A stretch of DNA of 64,000 bases from Takakia lepidozioides. Its lineage: Eukaryota > Plantae > Bryophyta. The stretch covers positions 53,816,001 to 53,880,000 of the forward strand of contig CM060731.1 of the NCBI GenBank assembly GCA_030704615.1. The letters are read 5' to 3'. The notes under the pieces are model-generated. The model saw only the letters and a program-made list of their open reading frames with translations. It had not been told where the DNA came from and searched no databases. Shown here piece by piece: positions 18,862 to 46,447 of this stretch. Position numbers and translations under genes: made by a program. The first letter of the stretch is position 1. The number at the start of each line of letters is the position of its first letter.

Positions 18862-21800
18862 TCAATCCACAGAATTTGCCAGGACTCTAAATGCTGTGAA
18901 TTTTAGCAAAAGCTCGTTTTCTACCCGATGCAGAACAAAAAGCTCCTTGGAAGTTATGAAGCTTGTCACAGTGCCACGCTCCTGTGTGATTGGCCGGCGT
19001 CCTGTTCGTCCTGCACGGTGGATGTAGGAAGTTACCGAGGTTGGCCACTCCAGGTTGTACACGTGGCTCACTTCTGGCAGGTCCAGACCCCTTGCCGCCA
19101 GCTCTGTTGCTATCAACAGACATCTGCCTTCCCTGAACTCCTGCAATGGTGTAAAGGCGAGTTTACTTTTTTTAAGTTGTTCAGGTTTTTAAGTGGAAGA
19201 AGGGTCCCTCTGGAAAGAGAAAGGGAGACCAAGTATTACACAACAACTGACATAACGGAACAAATGATGATTGTTTGGCCCTCCTACAAGGCCAGCCTTT
19301 CACCAGCCTTCCAGAAAGATGAATATTTCCAAGCCTCCCAAGTGGTGGCCACAGGTATGCAAAAGGCAAGGTAACCCTAATTCCAGTTACCAAAACTTTA
19401 GACCGAACTGTTCAAGTTTATACTAAAATCCTTGGCTCTCTGCCCTCACTGCTGCATGCCTACAATTCCCAAGACACAATGTAAGAGTGTTAATGCTTGG
19501 TTAACACAACATTTAAGGTCCAGTTTGTTTTTTAAAAAGCCTGTCTAATCCTCTGGTGAGTTGTTCTGCAGGTTTGTGGATTTAGAAAGAAAGAAGGAAA
19601 CAAAGAGGCCCTGTCTTGCTGCAGTCCCTTTAAGAGGTTTCAACCTGACACTATTTGGTGGTCCATTGAGACATAATCCATGCAGCAAAAGATTGCTATA
19701 GAGACATACAGATAGACTGGAAGCACGAGCATTGATGTGGGCATCTTCCTCCAAAATTAAGGGTTCCCATTGCCGATTGCTTTCATTCGCCACAACTGCA
19801 CTGTTCATCTTTGCCAGGAAGTCAGCCACGGCAACTGTTGAAGGTATGTCGCCTGCCCTACTTGACTTTTCAGACTGATGACACAAGACAGCACTAATGT
19901 GTGAATTCTTTTAACATGTTCATGGGTTGTACTCTGGCCAATTCCAAGAATGATAACCTTTGGTAAACTAGCTGCAAAGTTTCCTAAACCTCCACATCCA
20001 ATGAACCCCTCTCATGCAGAACACGAAGTCCAAAACTGTCTCACAGTCAAACAGGTTGGAACTCTATTGACTTTACCACATACTGACAGAATCGAAAGGA
20101 GCCTCTTTCTCACACCAAGTAGTGATGACTTGCATGCACAAAGTATCACTGTTATGGTTCAACATGCACTCCGAGGATAAGCACCTGGTCGTTCACAAAA
20201 ATGATAGCTGCCCTTGGCGCATCTGCTTCCAACACTGAAAATAGAGCCTGCAGTCTTTCTTCCTTCTCACACACCTGGGAGTCCCACATGTTGGGCACTC
20301 ATTACAACTACCTACACGAAACAGTCCACATTCCTCTGCTAGACTGGTGGGACCAGTAAAGAGATGCTGGGATATCAATGAATGGCATAAGCACTAGTCT
20401 ATGACCAATATACTCGACGGTTCCCAGAGAGTGAGAGAGAGGCATGCCCACAGAACCTGTTCCCAATTGCAGCAAATAACCCACCTTTCCCCCAAGTGCA
20501 GTGAAAAAATGCAGAGGCAGGTAGACTCCAACAAAAGACCCAATACAAGCAAAGGAGGACGTTTGGTGTAGACAGGGGCATACCACATAGCGGTGATGAA
20601 GAAAGGATGGTATCTTTTCTTCAGGAGAAACATGGATATGTACTATGTTCTCCTGCAAAATGTGAGTTATAAATAATCAAGAGGAAGTTCTGATGACATG
20701 GAGGATGATCAAGAATAGATCCTTCCACACAGTATGTAGCCCAAGACTCATCTATGTACTACACCACTCCCACTCTGACCACCAGTTCTCCCCTTTCCTC
20801 CATTTCAGAATAGAATCTGTTGTAAGATTTACCCGAGATCTCCATATACCTGCTACTTCCTTGCAATTCATCTTTGTTCATGCCACCAACTATCAGTTTA
20901 GTATTGCTTCTAGTTCATTTTGTCACCCTGAATGGAGGACACTCAGTACCAAATGCTAGGCCTCATGGAAAGTGATGGATTGTAGAAGCACCAACCTTGG
21001 CCCACTTGTTCTGTATGCAATCTATTAAGAAACGGCGATGCTGAGGAATAGTGGCGCTTGCGAGGATAGTTTGTCTTTCCTGGGGACGAGTGTGCACACT
21101 CAGAAGCTTCTGGAGAAGGCCACCTTCCTTTGCAGCGCCAACCATGGCATCCACCTGTCCTGCACAATTCAGTGATTTATTGTTTTAATGATGCACTTTC
21201 ATGCAAAGTGCTGGCGATACATATGGACACAGAAAGAATGTTCTTGTAAGACGTTGTTTGCTGTAGCCTTGGCCATAGACCCTGCGCCAGATAGACACTA
21301 ACTTTGTATGGGGCTCACTCCAGTAGTGGAACTTACCTTGGTATAAACGATATCCCGGAGCCTTTTGTGGGTTCACACCCACCAGGTTTGAGAGAGAATA
21401 TGCTCATAAGACATTTGCCATAGCCTTGTGGCCATAGCCCCCCCGCCCAGTTTGGGCAGAACAAAAGGGAAGAGATACTACCTGGCTCACTCCGGTAGTG
21501 TGATATAGACAATCAGTTTGGGTTTTCCAGATATCCTCTACAAAGCCCTTCACGCAAGCATCAACTTGCTGTGTGTGAGCTGCCCAGCAATTAGACCCCA
21601 ACAGGGCCAGGGCTTTAGGCTCAGCCTCAAATTTTGAAAGTAGGTGACCAGAGGTGCGGGGATAATGTTCTTTATATTCCTGCAGAGGGTCACTCCCTGG
21701 TGAGAATATCCCGGACAAAGTATCAGAAAGTGGATATTGTCTTCAGGCTGCCCCCACATCGGGCAATTACAATCTCCTCTGCCCCTCTGCATCTGTTTAT

Positions 21801-24800
21801 TGTTCAAAGGTAGGCTCCTCACCCTGAGTTTAACTATATACGTATATATAGAACCTCCCTGTCCTCTAGGAAGCCTATTGCCATTGGGTGGACTTGATAC
21901 GGGAGTACATTAATGTCTCTGTGACTAAATGCCGGCCTTGTGACCTCGTGTCCTTGTTTGTTTCGACCTGAAGCGCTTTGCTCCAGGTAAGGTAGTGCAT
22001 TGGATTTAGTTGGAAAGCTTGGGGCCTTTCCCTCTTTAGAATATGCCTACACGGGCCATTCCCTGCAACTCCCTGGAGTGTGATCTCTGAATGGTAACAA
22101 GCGGACCCCTACCGCTTGGGGGCAGCCCCTCCGCCCAATTTGGGCAGTCGTATGCTCTGTATAGCATACTCGGCACTTGGGCTCGGGATCCCAGGATGGA
22201 CGATGTGTCCTTTAAAACTACATGCTCTAGCTTAGGCTTGGATTTCTTGGCTAATGGTTCCATCTCGAGACTTGATAACAGGGGTACGTTGAAGGTTGCA
22301 ATGTCCAAAAGTGCTTCTAATAGAGTCCCACATCAATTCAATCTCAAAGAAGTTCGTCCCTTGACTGGCTGGAGAGCGGTCTTAGACATTGGTGATTCAA
22401 TGGGGCACTCTAGGAAGACAACCAAGGGCAAGGACTTCAACTTGAGAGTTTCTAATCGGTTTGATGCTCTGGATGAGGTTGAATCCAAACAGCCAGAAGG
22501 ACAAGATGCCCCTAAGTGTACAGAACCTGAACGTCCTGAATCTGAAGGATTTGGTACTCTGAATGGTTTACCAATCCTCAAGGTTTACACAAGACGAACA
22601 AATTCTATACACGGGGTAATTGTCCCCAAGCCGTCAGATGGACAATCTGTCCCTAAGTGTGCAGAGCCTGAACGTCGTGTAACTGAAGGATTTGGTACTC
22701 TAAATGGTTTACCAATCCTCAAAGTCTACACAAGACGAGCAAAATCTATGCACGGGGTAATTGTCCCCAAGCAGTCTGACGGACAATATGCCCCTAAGTG
22801 TGCGGAGCCTGTGCGTCGTGTAACTGAAGGATTTGGTACCCTGAATGGTTTACCAATTCTCAAAGTCTACACAAGACGAGCAAAATCTACACATGGGGTA
22901 ACTGTCCCCCCTTTGCAGAACGGTTTCCCGTCCAGGAGCAATCACAAGCTACCTAGACGACAAACAATTCACATGCAAAGGGCTGGCTTGCGGCTGGCCA
23001 CTTTCAACTTCTCAGGGCTTACTAACCAAAGGAAACAACTCGAAGTGGGACAAGTCCTTCGGACTAATGATATTCATATCTGTGCTGGGCAAGAAACATG
23101 GGAAACGTCGGATAAACTGGTTGGAGATGTCAATGGTTATAAATGGGCAGGTAGGATGTGTACTCTCAAGGCAGCCTCTGCCAAACGCGGTCAGAAAGGG
23201 GTTGGATTCTTTGTCTGTGATTTCTTGTTTGATAATTGTGAAATTATCAACAAGGGTTTGAGGTACGAGCATAGTATCTGGCTAAAACTGAATCTGAAGG
23301 GCGGCATGAGTACGAAGGACCTCTTTGTGGGTTGTGTTTACATGCCCACAGAGGGGACCCTTAGTGCTGACGCAGACAAAGCCTTCGAAGATGTAAAGCT
23401 GGACTGTGCCTCGTTCCTTGCCAAAGGTCAGGTAGTGCTATTGGGTGACTTCAATGCTCGGGTGGGCAAAGGGCTCCATCAGGACGATATCATTGGGCCT
23501 TTTGGTGAGGACGAGCTGAATTCTAATGGCTGACAGTTAATTAACTGTCTGGAAGAGCTTCAGCTTTTGACCTTGAATAACAGGACAAGAGGTGACCAAG
23601 TGCAGTGGACTCGTGAGAAATCCCAAACTGGGGAACGTTCCATTGTGGACTATATCATAATGGACAAAAATTTGTTTCCCCAGTGTGCCAATGTGTTGAT
23701 CGACAGAACTGATATTGGTACCTCTGACCACTTCCTGGTTTGGACTGAGATCAAAAGGTGTTTTCCCAACACCAAGAGATCTGTGAAACGTTCGATTCGG
23801 AAGTGGCGCATAGAAAAATTCCATAATGAGGAGGTCAAGGCTGAGTACGTCCAGGCCTTGCAAGAGGCTCTCCCTCATTTTGTCCAATCGCTCCAAGAAC
23901 TTCAGTCTCGCTCTGACAACGCAAGAAATGAAGTCGAAAGAGCAGTGGACTCTTGGGAGAGTTTCGTTTCCTCCGTGGCTGAAAAGATCATTGGGAGGAA
24001 ACTAATTGTCTGCGGTAGAGCTGTTAATTGGTGGACCAATGAGATCAAACTCAAGATAGCTGAGAGACGAGCCCTTTATAAAGAGTGCTGCAATTTGAAA
24101 ACCAACAGAGAATTGTGGGCGAGGTACTACCAGCTCCGTAAAGATATCAATCAGCTTGTTAGGTCTCAGAAGAAATTATACTGGGACAAGTTATACAGTG
24201 AAATAAACTCAAACCACCATGGTGGTAATGACAAGAAATTCTGGCTGGCCCTTCAACGTTTGTACAAGCCTAAAAACGGTCAGCAAGTACAAGCGCTGAA
24301 GACTACTAAAGGTGCAGTGGTGACTTCATCGGTTGACATTGTCAAAACCTTTGAAAATCACTACATTATCCTTGGCAGAACTTCTAGGTCTAACAGTGAG
24401 GGGTCTTCTGCTGAATGGAGGGACACAGTTGGAAAAACTGTTCCTATGATTCACAACAGCCCTGATGAACTGGAGTATATTTCAATGGCTTATAACGCTC
24501 CCATTAGTTCTTCTGAGATTGTGGAAGCAATTGAACATTTAAATGGATATAAAGCTGGTGGACCTGATGGTATTGTCAACGAGCTTATCAAGCACGGTGG
24601 CGATCCCATGATAGAGGCCCTAGTTCTCCTCTTTAACCTTATCTGGAAGACTGAAATGATCCCCTTTCGCTGGCGACAGGGGGTCATTGTCAATCTATAC
24701 AAGAAGGGTGACAGAGAAGAACCGGGGAACTACCGTGGCATCACGCTCCTCAATGCTGTTGGCAAGACATTCTGCAGAGTTATAAGTACTCGTCTCGAGG

Positions 24801-27800
24801 TTGATCTGGAGTCTAGAGGTTGTTTCCACGAAGGCCAAGCTGGCTTTCGGCGAAACAGGGGCTGTGTGGATCATATCTTCACTCTAAGCCAGATTATCCA
24901 GGGAAGGAAAAAAGAAGGGAAACCCACTTATGTTTTTTTCCTGGATGTCAAAAAGGCTTATGACACAGTGTGGAGAGATGGCCTATGGTTCCGCCTCTGG
25001 TCTTGTGGGATCAAGGGAAAGATGTGGAGAGTTGTCCACAACTTGTATGCTCACACCAAAAGCTGTGTCACTGTTAACGGACAGAAGTCCAACTTCTTTG
25101 ACATAGACCAAGGTGTAGCTCAAGGATGTACTCTCTCCCCTCTGCTCTTCAATGTTTTTATCAATCAACTCCTCGAGGATGTGGAAAGTGAGGGATTTGG
25201 GTTAAGGGTGGGTGATACCACCATACCAGCCCTTATGTTTGCGGATGACTTCGCAGGCATAGGGGAGACTCCAACCAATCTCCAGGAGTTGATTGATTGC
25301 GCGAAGAGATACTTTGATCTTTGGGGGCTAGAGGCTAATGTCAGCAAATGTGCAGTGGTAGCATTCAACGACAGAGGAGAGGGAGGAAGTGATCTTAAGT
25401 GGCAGTGGGGTAGCCAAGAGATCCCGGTCCTCCCTTCCTACACTTACCTGGGCGTTGAATTTTCCTCCAATTGTAATTGGGATGCACATATCCGGAAAGT
25501 TGTTCAAACTGGCAAGGGCAAAGCTCTGGGGCTCACTAAATTTTTCCACTGCAGAGGGGTCAACTCTGAGGTTAAGAAAACCATGCTTTGCCGCGTTATT
25601 AGACCTGCCTTGGAGTACGGATCTGCTATATGGGTTGATAACTCCAACCAGGCTAAGTCTCTAGAATCCATTCAAGTGGGGGTGCTTAAGGAGTGTATGT
25701 CAGCATGCTACAAAACAGCCAATGTGGCTGTTCGGGGTGAGTTTGGCATTCCGTCCTTAAGCTCCCGACGAGATGAATTCAAGGTCAGATGGTGGGGTCA
25801 GCTGCAACATACGCCCAACACCAGATATCCCAAGTTAATTGACTCTATATCTTGGAAACAGGACCGCCCTGTCAAACAGGCTAAGTCCTGGCAGAAGAGA
25901 GTAGAAGAGATTCTCAAGGTCCTGGACCTGGATCCGCAAGTCTTGACCCTGCTGGATAAATCTGATTTAGAGGCTGTAGTGTCCGATGCCATGTCTGTTG
26001 CCATGAGATTGTCTGATGAAAATGAAGTTAGGCAGAAAACCTCCCTGAACTTGTTTCCAGTCAGTGACATGGGGGAGGACATCTTGGATGACCTCAAGGG
26101 TCTACCCACTCTCGGCACTAGACTGAAATTTAAACTCAGGGCAGGAAGCCTACCTTTGAACAGCAAACAGAAGCAGAGAGGAAAGGGAGAGTGCAATTGC
26201 CCATTGTGTGGGCAATCTGAAGACAGTATTCATTTTCTGATACACTGTCCGGGGTTCTCTCACCAAAGAGACGCTCTCTTCAACTCTATCAAGGGAATTG
26301 TGCCTGTACCCCTGTTTACCAACTTTGAAAGTCTCGAGGCTGAGCCAAAAGCCCAGGCCCTCCTGAGGCCTAGTTTTTGGGCAAATCACACACAGCAGAT
26401 TGATGCTTGTGTGAAGGGATTTCTAGAGGATATCTGGAAAACCCGGATTAATTCTTTATATGAAGGTAAGTCTTACTACCAACGTCAGCCCCTGACAGAG
26501 GTAGGTTCTGTCCCTTTTGTTCCCGCTCAAACTGGGCGCGGGGTCAATGGCCACAAGGCTACGGCAAACAACGTCTTATGAATACAATATATATGTATAT
26601 ATAGAAAGATAGATGAATGTACTGATAAGATGTTTGCCGTAGCCTTTGTATAGACAATGCGCCCAGTTTGGATGGAAAGAGAGAGAGAGAGAGAGAGAGA
26701 GAGCACCTCATCAATGACAATGGTGGAGATGGCATTGGTTCGCAAGTGTTTAGTTTCAATCAGCCGACTTATGCTCTCTAATGTACCCACCACAACCTTT
26801 GGTGGCTCTGCCTGAACAGATGCAAACAAGAGGGCCAAGATCAATGACATGAAACCATTTGCAACTTCAGGATCTCATCAAAGACTATCAGAAACAAAGT
26901 CACAGCCATATGGTGCGAACAACCAAAGCCAAAGTGCCAAAGTGAAACTCGAGCTAGTGACCTAAAAGCTCTAACATACAGCTCCCACTAAGGGTGTACA
27001 GGCCAATCTGTCAAAGCAACTTTTACTTCTCTCATAATGGATTGAAATATTCTTAAATTCGACCAATATCAATTAGTAGCTTCGAGTTCACAAGTTGAGA
27101 CTGAGCTAAGCAATTTCTGATGCACCATGAAAAATGTTGGAATCACTATTGGGATGATGTAATCTGGAACCTTCAGCCAACTTTTCTGGCGGCTGGAAGA
27201 TCCACCATCCAACAAAGTCATCACTGTGACATTTCCCTTCTCCTTCTTCACCTTGCCTTCCTCTAGAGAACTCCACTCACCTTTCCCCACAAGCATACGT
27301 GCCACCCGAGCCACCTGCAAAGACTCACAATAACCAAAACAACCAGTTATATGTTGGACACTGGGTTCCAGTTTGCAGAAATGAGATCCATGCCAGGATA
27401 GAAGATCTTACACACACATGCGTGCAGCCTAATTGCAAAATGCCTATTTATGTGTGAAACCAAAACTATAATGGTGTCCAAGTGAAGAAAGTCCAAACAC
27501 ACTCTTTCATTTTGCAGAAATGAGATCCATGCCAGGATAGAAGATCTTACACACACACACACACATGCGTGCAGCCTAATTGCAAAATGCCTATTTATGT
27601 GTGAAACCAAAACTATAATGGTGTCCAAGTGAAGAAAGTCCAAACACACTCTTTCATTAACCTGCATTGAATGTGCCATTAGCTTTAACCCATATAATTT
27701 TTATGTCCATCCACCTGCTTCCAGTACTGTCTCCCTCTCTCATTTGCCAATCAACGTTACTGTTGATTTTGAAACTGGAATGCATGAGCTATGGAAGTCC

Positions 27801-29114
27801 CCCACACAGATTGTCACACAACCACTGTGACATCTGCAGAACGCAATGCATAACAGCACCGACTTGTTAATTCATTAGTGTCCAGTACCTGCATGCCCAA
27901 TTCACGGGTCGGGACAACCACTATAGCTTGCACAGCTGCTCGAGTCGGAACAATCTTGGTGAGAGTGGGAAGGAGGTAAGCCAGTGTCTTCCCAGAACCT
28001 GTCTGTATACCATATATGAAACAAGCAAGACAGAAATCATGTATCAAGAAATCCAAACCAGAGCTTCTACAAAGGGCACATCCCTCTTTCACACTAGAAC
28101 CTTGAAGTTACTACAAGAGTAGCCATTTGATGGACCTCATCCACAAATTGCTCATAGAACAGTTTCCCATGCGCAGTGATTAGAACTTATTTTGCAGTCC
28201 AACTTCAGATATAAAGTAACATGTTGAGCTGTCGGGAAATTAAACATTACCTGGGCATGGAGGATGCAGTCTTGACCAGAGAGAATAAGAGGCAAGGCCT
28301 CTTGTTGCACTGATGTGGGATATTTGAATCCCACCTCTTCTGCCCTGTAATTCGACTTCAGTCAGCAAGGATACAATTGAAAGCATCTCTTCCCTGACTG
28401 CGAAGTCTCAGGTCTTCAACCCAAACTCTTGAGACATGAATCCTTTACACCATGCTCTATGTAGCCTTATGAGGCTATGGCAAACAACGTCTTATGAGTA
28501 CATTCTATGTAGCCTTATGGCATCAGAGTACCAGATGAAGGGGAAGATATAAAAATGCACTCCCCAGTAGTGAACTTCCTTTGACCGGGTTTTAGTAGCA
28601 TCCTGACCTCAACTGCATGCGACCATCGATCATCTCCGCTTCACTGCTACCAGCGTCCTATCTGCTAAATTAAGCACTGGTCTGGGTGTCTCAAAACAAC
28701 ATTTATGTCTGGCCAGACGGAAGAACGAGAAAGTTCAAGAAAGATTTACCGTTGCAAAAGGTCTTGGGATACCATGCCTGAGCAAAGCTCCCTCAAAGTG
28801 ATCCTGTCGTCAGCTGTATCATCATTCGGGGTCCCTTCCTGCATCTCTCCATCTCCATTTTCTGTCTTGATGCTGCTCTCTCTTTCTTCCTCATCTCTCG
28901 GTGAAATTGTGGAGATGCCAGAATCACAAAGGGACGACCGTGCTCGCCAAATCAACTGTTTATCGCAATCGGAGCGAGGAAGCTTCAGGGATCTGTACCT
29001 TGAGCTATTATTCGGGAACAACGGAAAGAAAGAGAGAGATTTGTCGGTCAGAACGCTTCCCCAGGTCCTCGTCAATGCAGGGAAGTTTACCAAAGCTCGG
29101 AGCGGCATGGTCAT
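18862..29114 (-). CDS. RH58: DEAD-box ATP-dependent RNA helicase, RH58-like (chloroplastic), 10 coding exons
   Basis: Exons with GT-AG borders: 29114-28750, 28344-28251, 28002-27889, 27314-27171, 26811-26707, 21154-20996, 20652-20584, 20274-20185, 19874-19710, 19140-18862. Motifs: Q-motif GF..PT.VQ, HAQTGSGKT, VPTRELGMQV, DEVD, SAT, AARGLDLP, YIHRAGRTGR. Ser/Arg-rich transit-peptide-like N-terminus. Start codon inferred. Confidence 0.9.
21238..21389 (-). mobile_element. 5'-truncated, diverged 3'-end copy of the LINE family
   Basis: Reverse complement matches the LINE tail (GGCCAAGGCTACAGCAAACAACGTCTTAC..) and the CAAGGTAAGT region. The 5' boundary is approximate. Confidence 0.75.
21398..21833 (-). 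mobile_element. 5'-truncated 3'-end copy (~435 bp) of the LINE family
   Basis: Encodes CNCPMWGQPEDNIHFLILCPGYSHQ and HTQQVDACVKGFVEDIWKT...GHKAMANVL, homologous to the C-terminus of the 23567-26581 ORF. Confidence 0.92.
22091..26581 (+). CDS. LINE polyprotein: N-terminal repeats, apurinic-like endonuclease, reverse transcriptase, CxxC...HxxxxC; one internal in-frame TGA
   Basis: APE motifs ATFN, QETW, GVG, VYMP, LLGDFNARVG, VDYI, SDH. RT motifs NYRGITLL, QAGFR, FLDVKKAYDTV, GVAQGCTLSPLLF, FADD, YLGV. ORFs 22091-23533 and 23567-26581 share a frame (offset 1476 = 492 codons). Confidence 0.9.
22490..22910 (+). repeat. Three 141-bp (47-aa) coding tandem repeats in the LINE N-terminus
   Basis: CCTAAGTG starts at 22511, 22652 and 22793. 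Unit PKCAEPERRVTEGFGTLNGLPILKVYTRRAKS.HGVIVPK.SDGQ. Confidence 0.95.
26617..26671 (-). mobile_element. Short diverged LINE 3'-end copy next to a (GA)n tract
   Basis: Reverse complement reads CAAACTGGGCGC...AAAGGCTACGGCAAACATCTTATCAGTACAT. (GA)n follows at about 26677-26703. Confidence 0.85.
27372..27658. repeat. Tandem duplication of ~140 bp in an RH58 intron
   Basis: Units start at 27372 and 27511 and are near identical apart from the length of the (CA)n tract. Confidence 0.92.
28472..28503 (+). mobile_element. 32-bp LINE-tail insertion with 16-bp TSD
   Basis: AGGCTATGGCAAACAACGTCTTATGAGTACAT flanked by TCTATGTAGCCTTATG at 28456-28471 and 28504-28519. Confidence 0.9.
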
Positions 29115-32281: not shown

Positions 32282-32353
32282 GGTGGTGGTGCCTGACTGA
32301 AACAACTGTGAGCCCACAAGAAGGTGCACCTCACACTTGACACACTCTAGAGA

Positions 32354-34150: not shown

Positions 34151-37100
34151 ATGGCGAATGAGAATGAGCATGAGCAGGATTGTGACAAGGATTGTGAGAA
34201 AGGGGCGTCTGTGCAGACGGCGGGGGTGCTTGACTCCATGGACGATGATCACTCAGCTGAGGCCGGCCATAGAAGCAAAGATGAAGATGAGGTGACGCTC
34301 TGCTCACCCTACGGCTGTGGTTTAACGATATTATTTGTCTGTATGATTGCTGAAACGTGGTGGTAGAACGTGGGGTTTGAGGAACAGTTTGCATCCTCCC
34401 CTCGTTTTTTCCATTGGTAAATTGCTCTTCAAATTCGATTTCTGCTGTAACTCAAAAAAATTTCAAAATTGTGAATGTCATCTTCTTTTTTACCTGCCAT
34501 CCGTTATCGAATTTCGAGTATTAATTCTCATCGCCACTAGAAGATTATGAGTGGATGGAATATTCATGAGGAGAGTGTGAGACTTTACAGGACATAACAG
34601 GATTTGAATTCCGACCTAAAATCGTCACCCGTCACTTTCCGTGTCAAACCTCCAGATTGGGAATTTGTGAATGAATAGCGAGGAGCTTGAAGCTGATGTG
34701 GTGGTGTCCATTTCACATTCCGTTTCGTAAATATATAATACATTGGCAATGATATGGAAGTCAGGCTCAGTGAATTCATGAATTGCCCCATGAACTAGAG
34801 TGTGTACTTCAGATTGTGATCAGCTCCCAACAAGTTTCCAATTCTTTCACATCATGCATGAGCTAGAAAGAAATACCTTAATAGTGGAGTGGTTTTTTAA
34901 ATGAGGTGATGCTTTTGGAAGGGGCTTGCTTGATGTAATCTGGAAGTATGGACAGACTGGGGGGAGCCTGGTGATGGTAGTTGCCCGAATCCTGCTCTCC
35001 TCTCTCTCTTTTCCTTTTGGTCTTTCTTTCTATTTCTTCTCACCGGGCCTTGTTCATTCTCCTCCCTGCCTTCCCTTTCCATTTTGTCTGAACATGTCAG
35101 GGTTTTTGATCCAAACGCGCAGGAGGCCCTTGCACGTATGGAGGAAATGAAGAAATCAGCAGAGGCTAAGCGATCCTTGCGCCAAGCTAATTTGGCTCCC
35201 GAAAGACCTGGTCTCTCAATTTCTCCCTCTCTTGTGCTTCCCCTGTACGGTTAGGGTGTGTTTTTTTCTTCTTTCCATGTTGTTGTACTGTGTTGCCGTG
35301 TCTCTGGACGTACTAAATCTCTTTTTGCCCTCCTTGCTATCTCCACTTGATGTATTCTGAAGTAGGTCTGGGTTTGTCCTATCATGTCGCATGTGCCCTC
35401 ATGGCCGTTGTCTTTCTTTCTTTCTGTCCTCTTTCTCTGTTTCTGTGTCTTTTTCTGTCCCTATTTATTCCAAGGTAAATCCGATTACGGAGTGTTTGTT
35501 CCCTTTTGTTCCGCCCAAACTAGGCACAGGGTCTATGGCCACAAGGCCACAGCAAACAACGTCCCATGAGTACATTCGTTTTTTGTCCCTGCATGTATGT
35601 CTATAGTATCGGACTTACCCTAATGTGAGGGAACCCCACCCCAGCTTGGAAAGGATATTGTCCCTACGGAGTCTACTCACAAGGGGAGGTGGTGGCCGAT
35701 GACTACGGGAAATGGTAACTCTGTTACATTTAGTACACGGTCTCTTACTCTTTTGTTGGGTCCTCATTTCTTTTTTGGAATGAATCTCTATTCACTCGGA
35801 GATATGCTTTAGTAGAAGACAGAGCACATCTCAAATATCTTTTGAGGGCTGTATGCTACTTACAGTTGTGTGCAAATGAGGCAGTATTCCAGTTTGGAGG
35901 AGCGCATTTCTATTCAGGTAATAAACTGACCTTGTGATCATGTCTTTACCTGGGTGGGGTTCAGATGCTAGCTTTTTCAAAACTCTTGACTCAAGCATCA
36001 AACGCAACACAGCTGTGATAAAGAAGCTGAAGCAAGTAAATGAGGAGCAAAGAGAAGGGTTACTGGAGGACTTGCGGGCTGTGAACCTTAGCAAGTTTGT
36101 CAGTGAGGCAGTCACTTCAATTTTGGATGCAAAATTGAAAAGCTCTGATATCAATTCAGCTGTACAGGTATTCGTAGTCTATGTTTAGTCTGTGTCTAGT
36201 TTGTGGATAGTATTTCGTGATCAGGAAGGTTATGATTGTTTGCTTGGTATTACATGCCACATAGTGTAGAAGAACACGTGGCGTTTCATTTGTCCCCAAC
36301 CCTCTCTTTCTCACACACACACAGGCACTCGGCTGGCAGGTGGAATTTTTGAGTGATACTGGTGGCATTGATTATTGTAACTGGACTGCATCTCATGACA
36401 ATCTGAAGTGCTAATTTCCTAATTTAGACCAGCCAGAAATATAATTGATCTTGCAAATGGGATACCAATGTACTGCAAATATTATGACATTCATACAATG
36501 GAAAAAAATGAAAACTTAGGCCATTTGTTGAAGGCCCCACTCTCTTTCTTGTATCCTGCTTTCTCTTGTCCCAAAAGCTGCTTGAGGTACTTTACATCAC
36601 GTTTTGATTCATGATGATTGATAAGATCTGTCTGTGTGTGGAGCCAGGTGTGCTCCCTACTGCACCAAAGATACAAAGACTTTGCTCCCACCCTCCTACA
36701 AGGGCTACTCAAGATGTTTTTCCCTGGAAAGACAGGTGATGAGGTTGATGCAGACCGGAGCTCGCGGGCCATGAGAAAGCGCAGCACACTCAGGCTTTTG
36801 ATGGAGCTCTACTTCTGTGGAGTGTTTGAAGATGCTGGGATTTTTGTTAGCATTATAAAGGATTTGACAAGTAGTGAGCATATGCGGGACAGGGAGACTA
36901 CTCAAACTAATCTGTCTTTGCTGGTCAGCTTTGCAAGACAGGGCCGGGGTCTCCTTGGCCTTCCCTTCTCTGGGCAAGATTTGCAAGAGGTATGTTTAAA
37001 CACAAGACAAACGCAGTTTCAATTCTTGAAGCATTTTAAGGGATGTGTATGTCTCTATCTCTCTCTCCTCAAGTCATCCTGGTGTGTGTCGGGACTGAGC

Positions 37101-40100
37101 CTTGGCTAATTGGTTATAAGATGTGAAAAGGTCTGCAAAGACGAAGCAGAGGTATGCAAAGTTACCAGCCACCTTTTGGAGCCAATCAGATGTTTGTGAA
37201 GTTGTTTTTGGTGAAAGCAGTTGGTTGTTGATGTTTATGCAGCTGTATAAGGAGCTCAGTGTGACTGCAGAGCAGAAGAAGCTTCTGCGCAAGCTGTTTC
37301 AATCCTACTTTGATGCAGTGGTTGATCTTCTCCAGTCAGACCATGCAGTAAGATTAGTTCATTCCCTCACGGTTGTGGCATCCCTTCCTCCTCGCAAGTA
37401 CCAGTTTATAGGAACCAAGCAGTAAATTGAGCATTACCGTACTAACTTCTGCATCCCCACAGAGGGGTCAGACCTTCAACATTTCAATGTCACCCACTTA
37501 CAAACTTTGTCTCTTCCAACGTATGATGCCTTGTATTCTTTTTCAGCTTTTATTTCTCTACACGCCTTGTGGCAGAGGCCGATCTCCTTTCTTGCGAAGG
37601 TTTCCAAGGATTTTGTTCTAGTGTTAGCAATCAATAGCAAAAACTTCTCCACCAATGACCGGAGTATGCTGAAAAGTACCTTTCTGATTGCTCTTCTAAT
37701 CTTTGTTTTATGATCCACGTCCCTAACTCGATTTCGTTTTTTTGCGTTACTTATCCCATTTTTCAAAGAGTTTACATCTGCGTTATAAAAGATGACTATT
37801 TCTTGCTATATATATGTGCCGTAAAGGGCCCATCCCCAAAAAAGGGCAGGAGCCGAAAGGTGGTGGCTCTTAGTTTTGCCAGCTGCAGCTGGAGTCCTCT
37901 CTCTCTCTCTCTCTCTATGTCCTAGGCTACGGCAAACAACGTCTTATGAGTACAATCTCTCTATGTCCTGCTCAAACTGGGCGCGGGGTCAATGGCCACA
38001 AGGCTACGACAAACAACGTCTTATGAGTACATTCTCTCTCACTAGGTGCCATGATCACTAAGTAGGTGTCAACATGAAGATACCTCATATAACTCTGTGC
38101 TTTGCTTGAAAAATACACTTTGCTCTTTTTAGAGGGTTGTTCAAGTTTCTTAGAAAATTTTCAGTTTCTTTGAGAAACATGACGTTGCTACTTAGATGCA
38201 GGTTATCATGCTCAATGAGAAGCTTGAATGGGTCTGTTTATTGTGATAGGCATTGCGTCAACTGGAACAAGAGAATGCACGCATGCTGAATGCCAAGGGG
38301 GAGCTTAGTGAAGACAATGCAGCCGCTTATGAAAAACTGCGCAAGTCCTATGAACATCTCTTCCGCAACATATCATCGTAAGTAGCTTGTACCCAGTGGT
38401 TCTTACCTGCTTGCAGCTTGACCCTGTCCCTGTTGTCATGGAGCGGAACAGAGGGAAGTAAAATTGTGTACTGTGCACAGGTTGGCAGAAGCTATGGACT
38501 TGCCGACCCCTGTAATGCCTGAAGATGGTCATACTACCCGGGTCACATCAGGAGATGATGGGACATCACTGTCTGTGGGGAAGGAGCCCACTGCACCAGA
38601 ACCTATTTGGGACGATGAGGACACCCGTTCTTTCTATGAGAGCCTCCCTGATTTACGGTACATGGTTTCCTTCTGCCTCATTGTGCTACAGTTGATTGAT
38701 GTCTGGAAGAGAGAGTATCGTGAGGCTGGAGCAGCTTGAGAAGGGGGTTTGCTATGTCCACAGGAGGCCACAAGGGCACACTAGACAGTATATTAGACTT
38801 GACTTTCCAGCCTTGTGTAGACATTCTGCTCACTGACCTGCAGGGAGGAAGGTAGGGAAGAACTCTACGATTAAAATTGTTGTACTTGGCATCAAATGCT
38901 AAGCAATCTTCCATGACTTGCAGAGCATTTGTGCCAGCAGTATTACTAGGAGAAACTGAGCCAAAGACTGGAGAGACTTCACACAAAGCCTCTGATCAAG
39001 TGGTAAGTCTCAAGATGCTCGATTTCAACGTCACTCTTTACGTGATCAAGTTTGTTGCTTTCTATGGGTTCTTCTAAAAGACCCTAGAGGTAATCCCTCA
39101 TGGATTAGTGAAAGAGTGTACTAAGTATACTTCACTTTGGTGGAGCTGTGGCCAAATGCTGTATACTGGTTTTTAGATGCAGAAACCCATAATTGGGTGA
39201 TTTGTTGCTTTGGTGATCCTGATTGTGTTCTCCACCCCTCACTGCTGTTTACATCAGTTTGTATTAAGAAATTGTGGATGATGACCATGCTATTATTCTG
39301 TATCTCCTGTGTGAGAGTTTGGGTGAAACATTTCACAGAGGCATTTCTCTCCTCAAAGAGCTAGGAGACCTCAATGTGTGGAAAAGGACAGATTATGAAT
39401 CTTTCTGTTGACCATTCCCTGTGAGCATGGCCTATGATGTTCCATTTGAGGAACAGTCCTTGTTACATCCTCCTCCATGATGAAGCAGGTTTTTTTCATA
39501 CAACAGGGTGTAGTATTTGAGACAGCTGGAAACATACAGAGAGAGTATGTGATGGCAGATACAGTGCCATTGTCTTGATCTGTCAGACATGACTGTGTAT
39601 TGATCCACCTGTCACCTGTCTATTTACTTTCCATGCAAGTTTTGCATTTCACAATGATCTTCCCTGATGACAGGAGCCTGAACCAGCTCTTGGGACAATC
39701 ACAGAATCACAAGAGCTAGGGCCAGAGTCAGACAGTCAGATTCTGGATACAGTGGTTGCCATGGCAGAAGAAAAAAGCACCTTTGCACTGGAGAAATCTA
39801 GAGAGAAAGACAGAGAAGAAAGGGACCGTGGGAAAGAGGCAGAGAAGGAAAAGTGGAAAGAGAAGGATGGTGAGAAAAAGGGGGAAAAGGAAGTCGAAAA
39901 GGAGAAAGTGAAAGGGGCAGAGGGCGCCAGTCTTGACAGTTTGCTGCAACGACTCCCTGGGTGTGTGAGTCGGGACCTAATTGACCAACTAACGGTACAA
40001 TTTAACGTGACCCCTGTCTCAATACTGATGGGCTGTTCATTCTGCTGCCACTCTTGCAGGGAAGAAAGAAGTGGAAAGGGTCGGGAATGTTGTGCTTTAG

Positions 40101-43100
40101 TTTAATGCCCTAGTTTGTGATAAGACTTCCTTTCAAGTACAAGCACTCCTTTTGTCAAGTGGGTATTATTTCATTGTCACAGCAGGAGGTATAACTCCAA
40201 TCAGGCATGCAGGACTGAGTTTCTCAATGTAGTTGGCCGTGCTTTGCCTTTGTACAGGTAGATTTCTGCTATCTGAATTCAAAGAACAGCCGCAAGAAGC
40301 TGGTTCGCACTCTGTTTAACGTCCCCCGCACCTCCTTGGAGCTTTTGCCATACTATTCACGGATGGTCGCAACCCTCTCCACTTGTATGAAGGATGTTGC
40401 TCCAATGATTCTCCAGTTGCTGGAAGAGGAGTTCAATTTCTTGATGAATAAAAAGGTTTACTCCTTTGGCATTTCCTTGTTTGGTGTTTTGATACGCAAA
40501 GTTATAGTAGAATTGTGAGACAGCAAGGGTACGTAGGGACTCAGTCTCCCTCCTTTCTCTGTCCCTCTCTCTCTTCATGTCTTGGGTCCGCCCAAACTGG
40601 GCGTGGGGTCTATGGCCACAAGGTTATGGCAAACAACTTCTTATGAGTATATTCTGTTCATGTCTTGTTTGTTTATGTCTGTGCCCTATCTCTGCACCTT
40701 TCTTTGAACTCAGTTTCTGGGATTATGATGGGTTGATAATCAGCATCCACGTCCCCGCTATGAAAGTACCTGTGGTGTGACTTAATGGGCATAGTTTGCG
40801 TTGTAGGACCAAATGAACATTGAGACCAAGATAAGGAACATCAGGTTTCTTGGAGAGCTTGCTAAGTTCAAGGTGGCCCCGCCTGGCCTGATCTTCAGCT
40901 GCTTGAAGGTGGGTAAGCTTAGAAACTGAACTTTCAGGCTTCTTATTGGGCAGAAGTACAGAAAGAGGCGGGAGGATTTATGCAGAATCTGGTCTGAGTT
41001 TTCTGGAGATAGATTGATTTGCAGATGCAACTCTGTTGCTGTTTAAATGTAGTAAGTGATGGCTGTCCAGCCCTTTCTACCCCAACAACTGTTTTGGCGT
41101 GGAGGTTTACTTGATGTATGTCAAGCTATATGCGCGTATAGCTATATGCGCGTGTTAAGTCACTTGTACTGGTGCTGCAGTCATGTCTAGATGACTTCAC
41201 ACACCACAACATCGATGTTGCATGCAACTTGCTAGAAACATGTGGGCGATTTCTGTATCGGTCCACGGAGACAGCCCTTCGCATGGGCAACATGCTTGAG
41301 ATCATTATGCGCCTCAAGAATGTCAAGAATCTGGATGCACGTCACAGTACCCTCGTTGAAAATGCATACTATCAGTGTAAGCCGCCTGAGAGATCTGCTC
41401 GGGTGTCCAAAGTGCGCCCGCCATTACATCAGGTAAGGCAATTCTCATCTTTGTTTGTCTGCCTGTGTAGCTCATTTTGTCTCTCCTTGTGTTATCACTG
41501 TTGCTGTGTTTATCTTGCATCTCCTGGATGAAATGACCTGACACAGAAGTGGGTTCGCCAGTATATTCGGAAGCTTCTGTTCTCAGATCTGGACAAATCT
41601 TCCATCGAGCGAGTGTTGCGACAGTTGAGGAAGCTCCCGTGGAGCGAGTGTGAGGCATACACTTTGAAGTGTTTTATGAAGGTCTACAAGGGAAAATATA
41701 GCCAAGTGCATCTGATTGCTTCTTTAACAGCTGGGCTGAGCCGCTACCATGATGCCTTTGCAGTTGCTGTTGTTGATGAGGTGATGGCTTGTACCATTCC
41801 CCAGTGTTATTTTGAGGCTTCTAAATCTTCTCAGGTTATCTCATGCAGTTCCTAATGTGAGTCTCCGTATGTGTTAGCAGGTTTTGGAAGAAATAAGAAC
41901 GGGACTGGAGATGAATGAGTATGGAATGCAGCAGCGGCGCATTGCATACATGCGTTTCCTGGGGGAGCTTTACAGTTACCGCCTTATTGACTCCCCTGTT
42001 ATCTTTGACACCCTCTACCTTATAATTTTCTTTGGCTATGGAACTCCAGAGGTACGTTTGCAACTCTATCATAGGCTCAAGGTCTTCTCTCACAAAGGTG
42101 GAATAACTTTGAGTTGGACAGCTATAGGACTCATTGAATTTTCGAACAAGCTTAGAGCTTGAATGTCAGCGAGAGAGAAGAGGATTCTATGTGTGGTGGT
42201 AGCATTCTTGTTCTCACACATGCATGGGGCAACATGTCCTTGGAAAATTACTTGTTTTCATTTGGTGAATTGTTTTGGACACAGCAAGAAATGTTGGACC
42301 CTCTGGAGGATTGCTTTCGTCTTCGGATGATGATCACACTCCTTGAGACGTGTGGCCAGTTCTTCGACCGAGGCTCGTCCAAACGCCGGCTTGACAGATT
42401 TTTGCTCTACTTCCAAAGATATGTGCTGAGCAAAGGCGTGATCCCATTGGATGTTGAGTTCGATCTTCAGGTAGATTGGTATCCTCTTTTATCTGTAAAT
42501 TGTACTTTCAGGTTGTACTTTTCAGCAGCTCTCCGTGTCTCACAAAGTCTCTGTCTCTGCTTTGTTTCCTGTAAACATCTGTGCTTTCACAGATCCACTA
42601 AATACATGCACTTTCCGTCTGGCAGGACCTCTTTGCTGACTTGCGGCCAAAAATGGTGCGCTATGCAACATTTGAGGAAGCAAATCAAGCACTTCTTGAG
42701 CTTGAGGAACGTGACCGTAGCTTAGCTGCCTCTGAGAAGGATAGGAATGCGAGACAACAGAATGCAACGCCTCAGGCCAATGGTGAAGTCTTGGGCAACA
42801 GTACAGGCTTTGGTGATGGAAGAGAATTGCAGGGCAATGGGGTGACACCTAATGGAACAGCACCTGTTGAGGACAACGGGACAGGGTTGGGTGATGAAGG
42901 TGAGAGCGACACGGAGACAGAGAGTGGGAGTATGGAAGCTGATGGCCAAGAAGAAGAGGAAGAACTAGAAGAAGATAAATATGCGGATCATGAAGATGAA
43001 GGTATGGGTGCACTATAGAAACAAGCATAATGCCATTTAGATCTATGATCGTTTAAGGTATCCTGTGCCACAAGGTCAAGTTTATAACCACTGGTTGTTG

Positions 43101-44030
43101 GGTGCTCCTCGATTGCCGCTTGACATGAGTTCGTGTGTCTTTTACATATGTAGTTTTAGCATCTGTAACTTTGATTGTGGTGGGTGAAGGCTAGGAGCAT
43201 TGTATGCCCATTTAGGTGTGCCACATGTTGCAGTTGTGATCTGTGGTAGATATCAGTAGTGCACGCCTTGGATGTACTAAGAATCCCTTTGATTTGAGCA
43301 GACCTAACTGACAGATCTGTTGTGATGTCTAGGCAAGCATGCAGCAGGTCTTCATATTCCCTCCTACTTACCCATGTTGTGGAATACAGGTGATGACGAA
43401 TTGGATGTGGAGGAGTTAGAAGGGGGGGAAACGGCAGGATCAGAGGAGGAAGAAAAGGTGAAACTCATGCAAAAGAAGGTGATGGAGACAGATCCCGCTG
43501 AGGAAGCTGAATTTGAGCGTGAGTTTCGGGCACTCATGCAAGAGAGTATTGATTCACGGAAACTGGAGATGCGATCTCGTCCAACTCTTAATATGATGAT
43601 ACCAATGAATCTTTTTGAGGGGTCGAGGGACCATGGCCGTGGGGGAGGTACTGATATAGAGTCTGGGGATGAGGTGGTAGATGATCAAGGGAGTGGTAAT
43701 AGTGTGACTTTTCGGGTGCTTGTGAAAAAGGGACATAAGCAACAGACAAAACAACTCCATATACCACGTGATTGCTCTCTTGTCCAAAGCACAAAGCAGA
43801 AGGAGGCTGCAGAGCTTGAAGAAAAGCAAGACATCAAGAGGCTAGTACTGGAGTACAATGAGAGGGAGGAAGAGGACCGCGCAGGTGCAACACCGCAACC
43901 AATGAACTGGGTGCATCCCTCAGCACCTGGTTCACTGGGTAGAGGACGGGGCGGTTGGGAGGGTGGTGGCCGATTGGGCAATTCCCGGCAAAGGCGTCCT
44001 GTTGCTGCTGGCTATGGTCGCAGGCGCTAA
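34151..44030 (+). CDS. UPF2: Nonsense-mediated decay factor UPF2 (three MIF4G domains, acidic region, UPF1-binding C-terminus), multi-exon
   Basis: Exon peptides EALARMEE..RP, LDSSIKRNTA..KKLK, NLSKFVSEAV, IWDDEDTRSFYESLPDL, LPGCVSRDLID, LPYYSRMVATL, DFTHHNIDVACNLLETCGRFL, FRLRMMITLLETCGQFF, KQDIKRLVLEYNERE. ATG 34151, TAA 44030, GT-AG introns. Confidence 0.95.
35463..35575 (+). mobile_element. LINE 3'-end copy (113 bp) in a UPF2 intron
   Basis: Ends CAAACAACGTCCCATGAGTACAT. Putative 15-bp TSD at 35448-35462 and 35576-35590 (13/15 identical). Confidence 0.85.
37924..38032 (+). mobile_element. Two tandem LINE-tail copies after a (TC)n tract: a 32-bp unit (37924-37955) and a ~65-bp unit
   Basis: The 32-bp unit AGGCTACGGCAAACAACGTCTTATGAGTACAA is flanked by TCTCTCTATGTCCT at 37910-37923 and 37956-37969. 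The second unit ends TTATGAGTACAT followed by TCTCTCTC. Confidence 0.9.
40585..40652 (+). mobile_element. LINE 3'-end copy (68 bp) in a UPF2 intron
   Basis: 15-bp TSD TCT(C/G)TTCATGTCTTG at 40570-40584 and 40653-40667, next to a CT-rich tract. Confidence 0.88.
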
Positions 44031-45659
44031 GCATATGGCAGGTATTGTTCTCCTCCCCTCACATAAACTTACCTTTCGCATGACTTCTCCACTTTTGTTG
44101 TCCCCACAATTTGATTGCTTTGACTGGCGTTATTCGTTTGTGTGTCTTCGTGTTGTGCAATAATTGCCGTGCATTCCACATTTTAGCATGATAACCAAAG
44201 TCAGGTTAAATTAAAACGCATCTTTTATCTTCCCATGTTAGGACCATAAAGTTTTAGATCCCATCCTTCCGGTAAGGAAGGGACATATGTGAGTCACCCC
44301 TTGTCTTTTGTTCTATTGCACCGGCAGATTGCGGAGCTCAAAACAGGTTTAAACTGGCAGTCACCTTGTGAGGAAGATTGCAGTTGCTACAGGGTGACCT
44401 TGGAGCAACAAGTGCTGCTTGCAGTGTCGAGATGCTTGATATCTGGATAGAACCTCTGTTTTGGCGTTCTCTTTCCCAAATCCCATGGTCAGTATTGACT
44501 CTTCTATGAGCATAACCAACCCTTTCTTTCTAAATAAGGTGTTGCCCTTACCTGTAATGTTGATGGCTGTTTGATATCTCCTCTTGCTGGATCTGTGCTC
44601 ATCCCCAACTGAGCTTCCTTTTTGCACCAGTTTTGAGGAAGACTCTTGACTTGTCAGTGTGTGTGTCCAGGCTGATGTTGGAGACTTGTACCATATGAAA
44701 TAGCCTATATCGACACTCTTGGTGAGGAACTGAGGACTGCCACTTGGTCTACACCATGCTGGTTCAGGAACTGTGATATGGTTCATAAACTTGAAAATCG
44801 GCATAGGACTACTCTTTTTGGCTGGGTAAGCCAGTGAGAAGGAAAGTTGTAAAAGATGGACCCTCATTCCAGCACTCTATAGTGAGTTTGCAATTGCGGC
44901 AGTTCAGTCGGGTGTGTGCATTAGATGATGATTGTCTGTTGTCAATATATCATCCTTAGCAATGAAGGATGTGTGTTCAATGGACATTGGACATCTTCCT
45001 ACAAGATCATAAACTCTTATGGCCTGCAGATGTCATTATCCCATTCATATCTAGGGACTCATTCTATGCCCTAGCGTACCAAATCTCTCTGCAACAGATC
45101 TTTGTCCCTAGCAATTACCACTACCAAGTTCGTCTACTTGGAGAACTCAGTATTTACACAACCTAGTAAGTCTCAGATTTGAGTGGCTATCATTTGTTAG
45201 TGGTGAAACACCATATGTAGGTTTGATTTTGTTTGTATGGTGGTTTAATCTGTTTCATACTCATATACAACAGTCTGCTAATTTGTTAAGCAAATGGTGG
45301 CTGCTGCTTGACATGTCTGAACGTATCTTCAAGTCAGGAAAGCAAACTTAACCCTTACTGCCTCGTGTATGGGTTCAAGCTCATTACAACCTTGGTTGCT
45401 AGCTGTGCCGGAGGTTAGTATGGATGAAAATCTAGTCGTTTGTATCTGCACCCACCTGAGCGAGCATGCAAAGAGAGGGAAGAAAGGAAGTGAGCACAAG
45501 GCTATGGCAGAACAGCCTGGTGGCAATGAAGCATGATATCTCTCTCTTTGCCTCCAGCTCTGCGTTGCCCTGTCGACAACATCTGGGGTTGCACACTGCA
45601 GCTTGAGAACGATGCCGCTTGCCCATGCAATTCTTGTCTGTGTAGCCCCCCGATCACCT

Positions 45660-45870
45660 CGTGGGGTGCTGAAGGATGCTGGGTATGTTCCTGACACAAA
45701 CTTTGTATTGGATGATGTGGAGGGAGAGCAAAAGGAACTTTCTCTGTGTCACCACAGTGAGAAACTGGCCATTGCTTTTGGCCTGATGAGAATACCCCCC
45801 AGGATGCCTATCTGCATGATTAAAAACCTTCACTGGTGTTGAATTGTGGGAATTGTGGAGACTCAGCTAC
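45660..45870 (+). pseudogene. Isolated DYW-domain fragment
   Basis: LKDAGYVPDTNFVLDDVEGEQKELSLCHHSEKLAIAFGL..PP.MPI.MIKNL then a stop. No PPR repeats upstream. Confidence 0.85.
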
Positions 45871-45929: not shown

Positions 45930-46290
45930 CCACAACATCAGTCGCATGCAAGTCCCATTCGGCGGAGCTCAAATCTGCTCTCAAATCTGCTCTTCTCTGC
46001 AAGCCACATAGCAAGCACATCCTTCTCAACAGCCTCCGAAACTGGCCACTCCACAACCGACATCCAACAGTATACGTACAATGTTCTTTGATAGTCACTC
46101 AATGCGAACCCACCCAAACAATGAGAGATCTTCCAGTGACTTAAGTCTGCCAATCTCAGCTGGCAATGTGGTGATCCTGTATTGGGCCAAGAAGAGATGG
46201 CTAAGTTCTTCAATTTGCTGAGCTCGCCAGGTAGTCAAGGCACTTGCAGAGCATGAGGTTGAGCGTGAGAAGTGATTGAACATTAATAAG
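45930..46290 (-). pseudogene. Leucine-rich-repeat gene fragment
   Basis: IEELSHLFLAQYRITTLPAEIGRLKSLEDLSL fits the LRR consensus. Neighbouring sequence is disrupted. Confidence 0.6.
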
Positions 46291-46412
46291 GTGGTGATGT
46301 TCGTGCACCCTACGCCGAAGCGACCCTCCTGCAGATGGATGAATTTATTGTATGGTCCTATAAATCCTGCAGGGTGTTACGTTTCACATAGGCCGCGTGA
46401 GTCACTGAACTG

Positions 46413-46447
46413 CTAGCCTTGTGGCCATAGACCCCAGTGTGGTTTGC
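46413..46447 (-). mobile_element. Small LINE 3'-region fragment lacking the terminus
   Basis: TAGCCTTGTGGCCATAGACCCC is the reverse complement of the conserved GGGGTCTATGGCCACAAGGCTA. Confidence 0.7.

Follow-up and report, generated by a model that had tools for sequence, protein, structure and literature searches.

The window analyzed here, a 64,000-nucleotide stretch of the genome of the bryophyte Takakia lepidozioides (GenBank assembly GCA_030704615.1, contig CM060731.1, positions 53,816,001 to 53,880,000 of the forward strand), contains one near-full-length and nine 5'-truncated copies of a long interspersed nuclear element (LINE). The copies share a 3' terminus without a poly(A) tail, and the nine short ones are followed immediately by TC. 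They probably belong to an abundant LINE family with an apurinic/apyrimidinic endonuclease (APE), which spreads in this land-plant genome by target-primed reverse transcription (TPRT) and picks its insertion sites at the nicking and priming step. The evidence comes from the termini and target-site duplications (TSDs) in the window, from contigs of public sequencing runs, from the coding capacity of the element, and from its relatives in other lineages.

Termini and target sites

Copies were located by BLAST of positions 21700-26700 against the window and by an nhmmer profile of the 3' ends. The near-full-length copy spans 21854-26587 on the plus strand (4,734 bp). Its terminus is shared by the nine truncated copies (Table 1), all of which end ...TGAGTACA(T/A) or in a close variant: seven of the ten termini are GTACA plus T or A, and the other three are GTATAT, GCATAT and GAACAT. 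No poly(A), A-run or repeat tail is present at any of the ten termini in the window. The common 3' end of nine truncated copies, together with TSDs of 14-19 bp, constitutes the signature of TPRT.

The dinucleotide right after the terminus is TC in 9/9 short copies, all in one orientation, and TA in the full-length copy. TC accounts for 6.6% of the dinucleotides in the window, which gives a binomial P of 1.4e-8 when computed for 8/10 (the actual count is 9/10). Of the first 15 flanking bases, read on the sense strand of the element, 73% (109/150) are pyrimidines; the null is 75 +/- 7.6 bases, and none of 200,000 simulations gave so high a value (P<5e-6). A (TC)n tract with n of at least 3 is found at about four of the ten sites, and the remaining sites are merely TC-rich. 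The TC preference is strong, not absolute.

Four short copies have readable TSDs of 14-16 bp: those at 28472 and 37924 are exact, that at 40585 has one mismatch and that at 35463 has two. The TSDs of the minus-strand copies 21238, 21398, 26617 and 32354, and of the copy at 37970, lie in arrays or TC repeats and are not cleanly callable. All four readable TSDs begin with TC directly after ACA(T/A), and this TC, which the 5' copy of each TSD carries too, therefore belongs to the target. An extra TC unit between ACA(T/A) and the TSD was seen in none of the four. At two of the four sites the cut fell within a (TC)n or TC-rich tract or where such a tract ends. The TSD of the full-length copy is TATATA[C/T]GTATATATAGAA. 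The initial annotation had described TC behind nine short copies, its place at the start of the 14-16 bp TSDs, and the full-length copy as the exception in a TA-rich site; all three descriptions hold.

These sites might also be TC-rich without any insertion preference, either through better survival or tolerance of copies in TC-rich intronic DNA, or through growth of TC microsatellites out of the element itself. A TC-rich stretch 65-85 nt from the element end (…TTCTGTCCCTTTTGTTCC…) could indeed seed such repeats, and for Waldo of Drosophila a passive build-up beside CA repeats has been suggested (PMC3812793). This explanation is nevertheless very improbable: TC stands in the same register, exactly one base past ACA, in 9/9 short copies; the exact TSDs include it; and 32-nt copies, which lack the internal TC-rich stretch, still occupy TC sites.

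Genome-wide evidence from contigs

Contigs of four public runs were aligned on 21700-26750, an identity of at least 88% being counted as a match. In the DNA run X2, 47,205 contigs match the element. Their summed depth climbs by about 20-fold along the element (5' end ~7e4, 3' end ~1.7e6) and falls about 600-fold, to ~2.6e3, right after 26587. This profile indicates a family of very great size, truncated on the 5' side and sharply bounded on the 3' side; together with the ten termini of the window it bears out the poly(A)-less LINE with a fixed 3' end that the initial annotation had proposed. The same run contains 194 contigs that continue beyond the terminus (behind 26586), and their overhang consensus, TTCTCTCTCTCTCTCT, reads (TC)7 after ACAT, which extends the TC flank of the short copies to the whole genome. 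Another 57 contigs, which differ from the window copy in the last bases, give the overhang consensus GTACATTCTCTCTCTTTCT. Overhangs past the terminus are TC-rich also in runs X7 (38 contigs) and X8 (30 contigs), and overhangs before the 5'-truncation points likewise. In addition, some contigs join the 3' end of one copy, through a TC-rich spacer of 7-15 nt, to another truncated copy, so that head-to-tail arrays like those of the window are present in other parts of the genome too.

X7 and X8 were considered as proof of expression and rejected as such, their RNA origin being a guess and contigs showing no RNA ends. A further DNA run, X10, labelled as another organism, contains a few low-depth contigs 95-99% identical to the 21854-26587 copy; these could come from a close relative, a hybrid or contamination. 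When JGI metagenome contigs were scanned for the 21-nt terminus, the sole match was one unrelated contig. It carries at 63-88 an exact 26-nt string of the end of the full copy, including 3 nt of flank, and nothing else, and was judged a chance match in a very large collection.

A second explanation takes the TC run for a 3' microsatellite tail that belongs to the element and is derived from the RNA or from slippage of the reverse transcriptase (RT). Three of the distant relatives described below (L001, L005, L006) end GTA(TTA)n, of which TC would be the counterpart; the consensus right after ACAT is (TC)7; and such tails are common in stringent LINEs (PMC3472496, PMC6007223). A tail is quite unlikely, however, in view of the TSDs: i) TC(T) is found also in the 5' TSD copy in 4/4 readable cases; ii) with TC counted in, the TSD lengths (14-16 bp) agree with those of the relatives (15-17 bp); iii) at 37910-37923 the upstream (TC)9 is longer than the downstream tract; iv) the sequence 5' of truncated copies is TC-rich as well; and v) no TC follows the end of the full-length copy.

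Structure and coding capacity of the full-length copy

The 21854-26587 copy consists of a 5' untranslated region (UTR) of ~237 nt, a single open reading frame (ORF), and 6 nt past the stop codon. The stop is a TGA at 26579-26581, so close to the end as the initial annotation had it. The same annotation had called this 4.7-kb copy master-like, but the copy is not intact: almost all other family contigs have a different base at 23531 and read a sense codon there. The in-frame stop is therefore private to this copy, which is no master.

The ORF encodes, in order, a leader of ~300 aa, an APE-like endonuclease, an RT and a C-terminal region of ~370 aa with a CX2CX7HX4C motif. The leader is lineage-specific, since homology to the relatives begins only at ~aa 296 and then runs to the end. 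It contains 47-aa repeats, the number of which differs among genomic copies (contig joints skip 179 and 406 nt). The 300-aa leader with its repeats is absent from the relatives; it might be regarded, speculatively, as a candidate targeting module.

The endonuclease region of the stop-interrupted copy matches PF03372 with E=2e-4 and 21.6 bits (cut-off 24.5) and PF14529 with E=0.011. A PDB sequence search with it gave no match; relatives that align over the region carry both domains. The RT is of the non-LTR type, its best solved relatives in a PDB sequence search being human L1 ORF2p (E=7e-35) and R2 (E=1e-28). Downstream of the RT, PF13966 (zf-RVT) is sub-threshold (E=0.09, 13.8 bits vs a cut-off of 27.5), and the Pfam search of the element protein found no RNase H match.

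A hairpin within the last codons

Nucleotide conservation over the last ~50 nt of the ORF goes far beyond the need of the protein, between elements that are 35-41% identical and come from different kingdoms. When the plant copy was aligned by codons with six relatives and compared in pairwise cells, fourfold-degenerate third positions agreed in 80/119 cells (67%) within the last 26 codons and in 805/2500 (32%) elsewhere. A hairpin is predicted here. In nine sequences, drawn from the plant family and 6 distant relatives, its bases pair in 95.8% of cells; two pairs are compensatory, and its covariation score was attained by 1/500 shuffles. Plant copies alone predict the identical hairpin, and equivalents lie in relatives at 6425-6460 of L001, 4375-4410 of L002 and 13985-14020 of L004, and also in L005-L008. 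Such a putative structure fits a LINE of the "stringent" type, in which the RT recognizes its own 3' end (PMC4176376, PMC3472496); it lends support to this assignment, not proof.

Relatives in other lineages

The best protein matches are 35-41% identical and nearly all unnamed. Their sources are scaffolds of the TARA ocean metagenome, further ENA assemblies and Ectocarpus, and the best 120 include no protein of a land plant. L002 and L006 are from the TARA ocean metagenome, L001, L004, L005 and L007 from other ENA assemblies, and L008 from Ectocarpus. One further relative, P0014, lies on a contig that is from an animal, since it is full of SRCR-domain genes. The loci of seven relatives were read, and all contain a single-ORF element of about 4.4-4.6 kb.

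The C-terminal peptide …G(R/C)VVNG..AMA.. is common to the plant element and its relatives, and the DNA block CGCGTGGTCAATGGC–N6–GCTATGGCA is nearly identical between them. Six of the relatives have GTA immediately after the TGA and then just 6-12 further bases. In the Ectocarpus element the annotated ORF stops with TAA, and the end motif GAGTACGCC follows ~17 nt beyond. Besides the (TTA)n ends mentioned above, GTACGCC… is found in L007 and L008. Clear TSDs could be read in two relatives, of 15 bp in L001 and 16-17 bp in L004; they start with TTA or ATT, the unit of the tail. The relatives thus differ from the plant family in having (TTA)n-type or GTACGCC… ends and TSDs that begin with TTA/ATT instead of TC, and in lacking the N-terminal repeats. 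The missing 3' UTR, a TSD of ~15 bp and the agreement of the tail with the first bases of the TSD are thus lineage-wide properties, and the ACA(T/A) end and the TC target are peculiar to the plant family.

A model for target selection

The following model is proposed for the insertion of the family. The RNA would have a 3' end fixed at ...UGAGUACA(U/A). Its 3' hairpin would be recognized by the RT, which would begin copying at a fixed distance from it. A protein of the element, most likely the endonuclease, would favor polypurine/polypyrimidine duplex and place the first nick on the purine-rich strand, leaving a primer that ends ...AGA-3'. The last bases of this primer may also anneal to a few U/C bases forming the extreme 3' terminus of the RNA, a pattern displayed by the relatives, whose TSDs begin with a unit of the (TTA)n tail. 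The second nick would be made 14-19 nt downstream. Repeated hits on one tract give rise to head-to-tail arrays.

In this model a protein, most probably the endonuclease, would read the duplex, and short pairing would assist it. Recognition by protein is favored because the pyrimidine richness spans the TSD and the sequence upstream, because no TC units are left over, and because the endonuclease of Kibi provides a precedent (PMC4494074). Alternatively, the target could be chosen chiefly by base pairing: transcription beyond the terminus, into the TC-rich DNA that flanks a source copy, would supply a U/C tail, and this would anneal to nicked GA-rich DNA, a self-reinforcing preference not encoded by the endonuclease. 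The relatives, with TSDs that start with the trinucleotide of their own tail, would be in keeping with this, as would the lack of a terminator or poly(A) signal in the element and the extension of X7 and X8 contigs, possibly RNA, past the terminus into TC-rich sequence; a role of this kind has been proposed for 3' repeats (PMC6007223). Yet long (UC)n tails should leave extra TC units by register shifts, seen in 0/4 readable cases; X7 and X8 are merely guessed to be RNA, and RNA ends are invisible in contigs; and the pyrimidine richness reaches upstream of the nick, where there is no primer pairing. Selection by pairing is therefore considered unlikely.

Several points stand against the proposed explanation. 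The APE matches of the 21854-26587 copy fall under the Pfam thresholds. Just four TSDs are confidently readable in the window, two of them with ambiguous boundaries in TC repeats, and the full-length copy with its 19-bp TA-rich TSD means that TC is not obligatory. The genome-wide evidence is an overhang consensus (agreement 0.44-0.49) and not a TSD logo built per insertion, and alone it cannot separate target from tail; the runs guessed to be RNA cannot reveal the transcript end. The covariation of the hairpin comes from 9 sequences only and lies within coding sequence.

Copies, neighboring features and host genes

The features of the family in the window are collected in Table 1.

Table 1. 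Coordinates of the LINE family features in the 64-kb window
Feature	Position	Strand	Remarks
Truncated copy	21238-~21370	-	Diverged terminus …CAAGAACAT, then TCTTTCT; 5' limit approximate
Truncated copy	21398-21833	-	~436 nt, 75% identity to full copy; terminus …TGAGCATAT, then TCTCTCTC
5' TSD copy of full-length element	21835-21853		TA-rich, 19 bp; 1 mismatch to 26588-26606
Single ORF	22091-26581	+	~1,496 codons; one in-frame stop at 23531-23533
Three tandem 141-bp (47-aa) repeats	22485-22909	+	Self matches 88% and 85%; inside N-terminal ~300 aa
Putative APE-type endonuclease domain	22997-23741	+	Divided by the private stop; weak Pfam matches
Reverse transcriptase domain	24704-25459	+	PF00078, E=9.7e-34
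CX2CX7HX4C zinc-knuckle-like motif	26198-26248	+	3' of RT
Conserved 3' hairpin in last ORF codons (predicted)	26543-26565	+	GUC..AUGGCC-ACAA-GGCUA..GGC; RNAalifold
3' TSD copy of full-length element	26588-26606		19 bp
Truncated copy	26617-26680	-	~64 nt; preceded by (TC)14 in element sense, followed by TCATCTATC
Truncated copy with TSDs	28456-28519	+	32-nt copy 28472-28503; exact 16-bp TSDs TCTATGTAGCCTTATG
Truncated copy in two blocks	32354-32869	-	Blocks 32354-32475 and 32771-32869; then TCTCTAG
Truncated copy with TSDs	35448-35590	+	113-nt copy 35463-35575; 15-bp TSD TC[T/G]TTTT[C/T]TGTCCCT, 2 mismatches; 5' of UPF2 exon 35925-36185
Truncated copy with TSDs	37910-37969	+	32-nt copy 37924-37955; exact 14-bp TSDs TCTCTCTATGTCCT; cut within (TC)9; UPF2 intron
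Truncated copy	37970-38032	+	63 nt, head-to-tail after the 37924-37955 copy; then TCTCTCTC; UPF2 intron
Truncated copy with TSDs	40570-40667	+	68-nt copy 40585-40652; 15-bp TSD TCT[C/G]TTCATGTCTTG, 1 mismatch; end of TC-rich tract
Internal family fragment	46414-46436	-	23 nt; without terminus

The last of these had been counted at 46413 among the copies with a terminus, which it is not. Three minus-strand copies (26617-26680, 21398-21833 and 21238-~21370) form a head-to-tail array with TC-rich spacers that adjoins a (GA)14 tract. This array predates the long copy, which then entered its TA-rich spacer. The 3' end of the long copy and its inverted neighbor 26617-26680 now make up a palindrome of ~140 nt; the Rfam matches on the 3' end, miRNA-like and sub-threshold only, are caused by this inverted pair and were rejected. 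The copies at 28472 and 37924 are independent 32-nt insertions with an identical 5' end point, containing the last loop base of the hairpin and its 3' arm, which suggests a favored RT stop or RNA cut at this position. Older fragments of the same or a sister family are present at 7840-7904 and 8668-8999, and at 5600-5968 on the minus strand lies part of the RT of another LINE, with 27% identity.

The UPF2 gene lies on the plus strand; its MIF4G and Upf2 exons fall within 35925-44027. Assignment to introns was limited to copies between identifiable exons of a gene, and UPF2 was the only such gene. Three sites with four copies (35463, 37924/37970 and 40585) are in UPF2 introns or just 5' of the first recognizable exon; the 40585-40652 copy is in the intron between two exons of the second MIF4G domain. 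The insertions are in the sense direction at 3/3 sites (P = 0.125, not significant), and TC-rich candidate sites in the UPF2 region show no strand bias, numbering 189 on the plus and 208 on the minus strand. A sense bias in introns was accordingly rejected as unsupported. The initial annotation had reported seven of nine intronic copies in the sense direction and had concluded that the TC preference directs the family into introns with such a bias; the first is demonstrable at the three UPF2 sites only, and the second is not supported by three intron sites and candidate sites without strand bias.

An intact, intronless ORF of 674 codons for a pentatricopeptide repeat (PPR)-DYW protein occupies 30305-32329 on the minus strand. 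It starts 26 nt past the 3' end of the LINE copy 32354-32869, which has the same orientation. A piece of a DYW pseudogene (45537-45839, plus strand) is found just beyond UPF2. A short plus-strand ORF at 29300-29500, with a CCHC zinc knuckle and a weak PF00098 match, is possibly a gag remnant of another retroelement.

Relation to known LINEs

Microsatellite-specific insertion is known from the Tx1 clade, described as an animal group (PMC4494074). Kibi and Koshi of teleost fish are APE-type elements of this clade whose specific targets are (TC)n or (TTC)n microsatellites, and related Tx1 families of crocodilians have (TTCC)n/(TTTC)n as their targets (Kojima & Fujiwara 2004, cited in PMC3812793 and PMC4494074); endonuclease specificity is the accepted explanation of targeting by Kibi-type elements (PMC4494074). 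The initial annotation's analogy to microsatellite-targeting Tx1-group elements is apt, Kibi targeting (TC)n (PMC3812793, PMC4494074). Like Kibi and Koshi, the plant element is a probable APE-type LINE that appears to enter TC-type polypyrimidine repeats in a fixed orientation and hits the same tracts repeatedly. Unlike them, it lives in a land plant, has a stop codon 6 nt from its end and no poly(A) or repeat tail, and uses TC-rich tracts generally. Nor does it have the two-ORF layout (ORF1 and ORF2) of the Tx1 type, 22091-26581 being a single frame and the relatives being single-ORF too. Two protein searches gave no annotated Tx1-type protein name among the best 120 or among 76 matches, which argues weakly against Tx1.

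The 3' end invites comparison with stringent-type and RTE-clade LINEs. The RTs of eel UnaL2 and zebrafish L2 recognize a 3' stem-loop and a short repeat tail (PMC4176376), and in RTE-clade LINEs the first TSD base correlates with the 3' microsatellite (PMC6007223). As in these elements, the 3' end and the hairpin of the plant element are conserved and poly(A) is absent; its 3' UTR is very short as in RTE, and the TSDs of its relatives start with bases of the tail unit, again as in RTE. It departs from the stringent type in that its hairpin is inside coding sequence, with no 3' UTR at all and no repeat tail. RTE was reportedly described by Malik and Eickbush in 1998 as having a compact APE and RT protein of ~1,000 aa without a C-terminal Cys-His motif. 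The plant element shares with RTE the single ORF and the extremely short 3' UTR and lacks the repeat tail and the compact protein of ~1,000 aa, its own protein having in addition the ~370-aa C-terminal region with a CCHC motif and the 300-aa N-terminal leader.

The LINEs known from land plants belong to the L1 clade, which ends in poly(A), and to the RTE clade, which ends in (TTG)n (PMC3472496). In the usual account, land-plant LINEs are L1, of the relaxed type with poly(A), along with some RTE. The plant element resembles them in its host kingdom, in the combination of a probable APE with an RT and in TPRT with TSDs. It differs in having no poly(A), (TTG)n, ORF1 or RNase H, and its zf-RVT match is the sub-threshold one given above; the poly(A) tail and the zf-RVT and RNase H modules after the RT that mark plant L1 are thus missing from it. 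Searches gave no clade name: L1 scored slightly better than R2 in the PDB sequence search, the ESM Atlas gave generic RT clusters, and papers on brown algae and an overview of Repbase offered no classification that could be used. In plants, microsatellite targeting has been described for MULEs (Mutator-like elements) and MITEs (transposable elements of the miniature inverted-repeat type) (PMC5907723), and a 2025 review of the localization of plant transposable elements mentions no LINE of the TC-seeking kind (PMC12477314). The literature searched, with Repbase outside the search, contained no description of this family or of a TC-targeting LINE from a land plant.

Significance

It is possible, and suggested here tentatively, that the plant family and its relatives in marine protists, brown algae and invertebrates form an unnamed cross-kingdom LINE lineage, in which an RT-recognition hairpin is embedded in the ORF and no 3' UTR is needed, and that the plant branch independently evolved polypyrimidine/(TC)n targeting, intron arrays and tens of thousands of copies. 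If this is true, the lineage adds to land plants a third, target-selective LINE type beside L1 and RTE. The plant family would be a second, independent case of (TC)n targeting, and would allow one to ask by what means an APE endonuclease, or pairing between RNA and DNA, recognizes a polypurine/polypyrimidine duplex. Embedded in coding sequence and shared across kingdoms by conservation, the 3' hairpin would be a compact, testable, putative RT-recognition signal. In the Takakia genome itself, a hugely amplified, tailless, TC-seeking LINE would alter the annotation of repeats and introns, and would explain the clusters of odd 32-110 nt repeats beside TC microsatellites.

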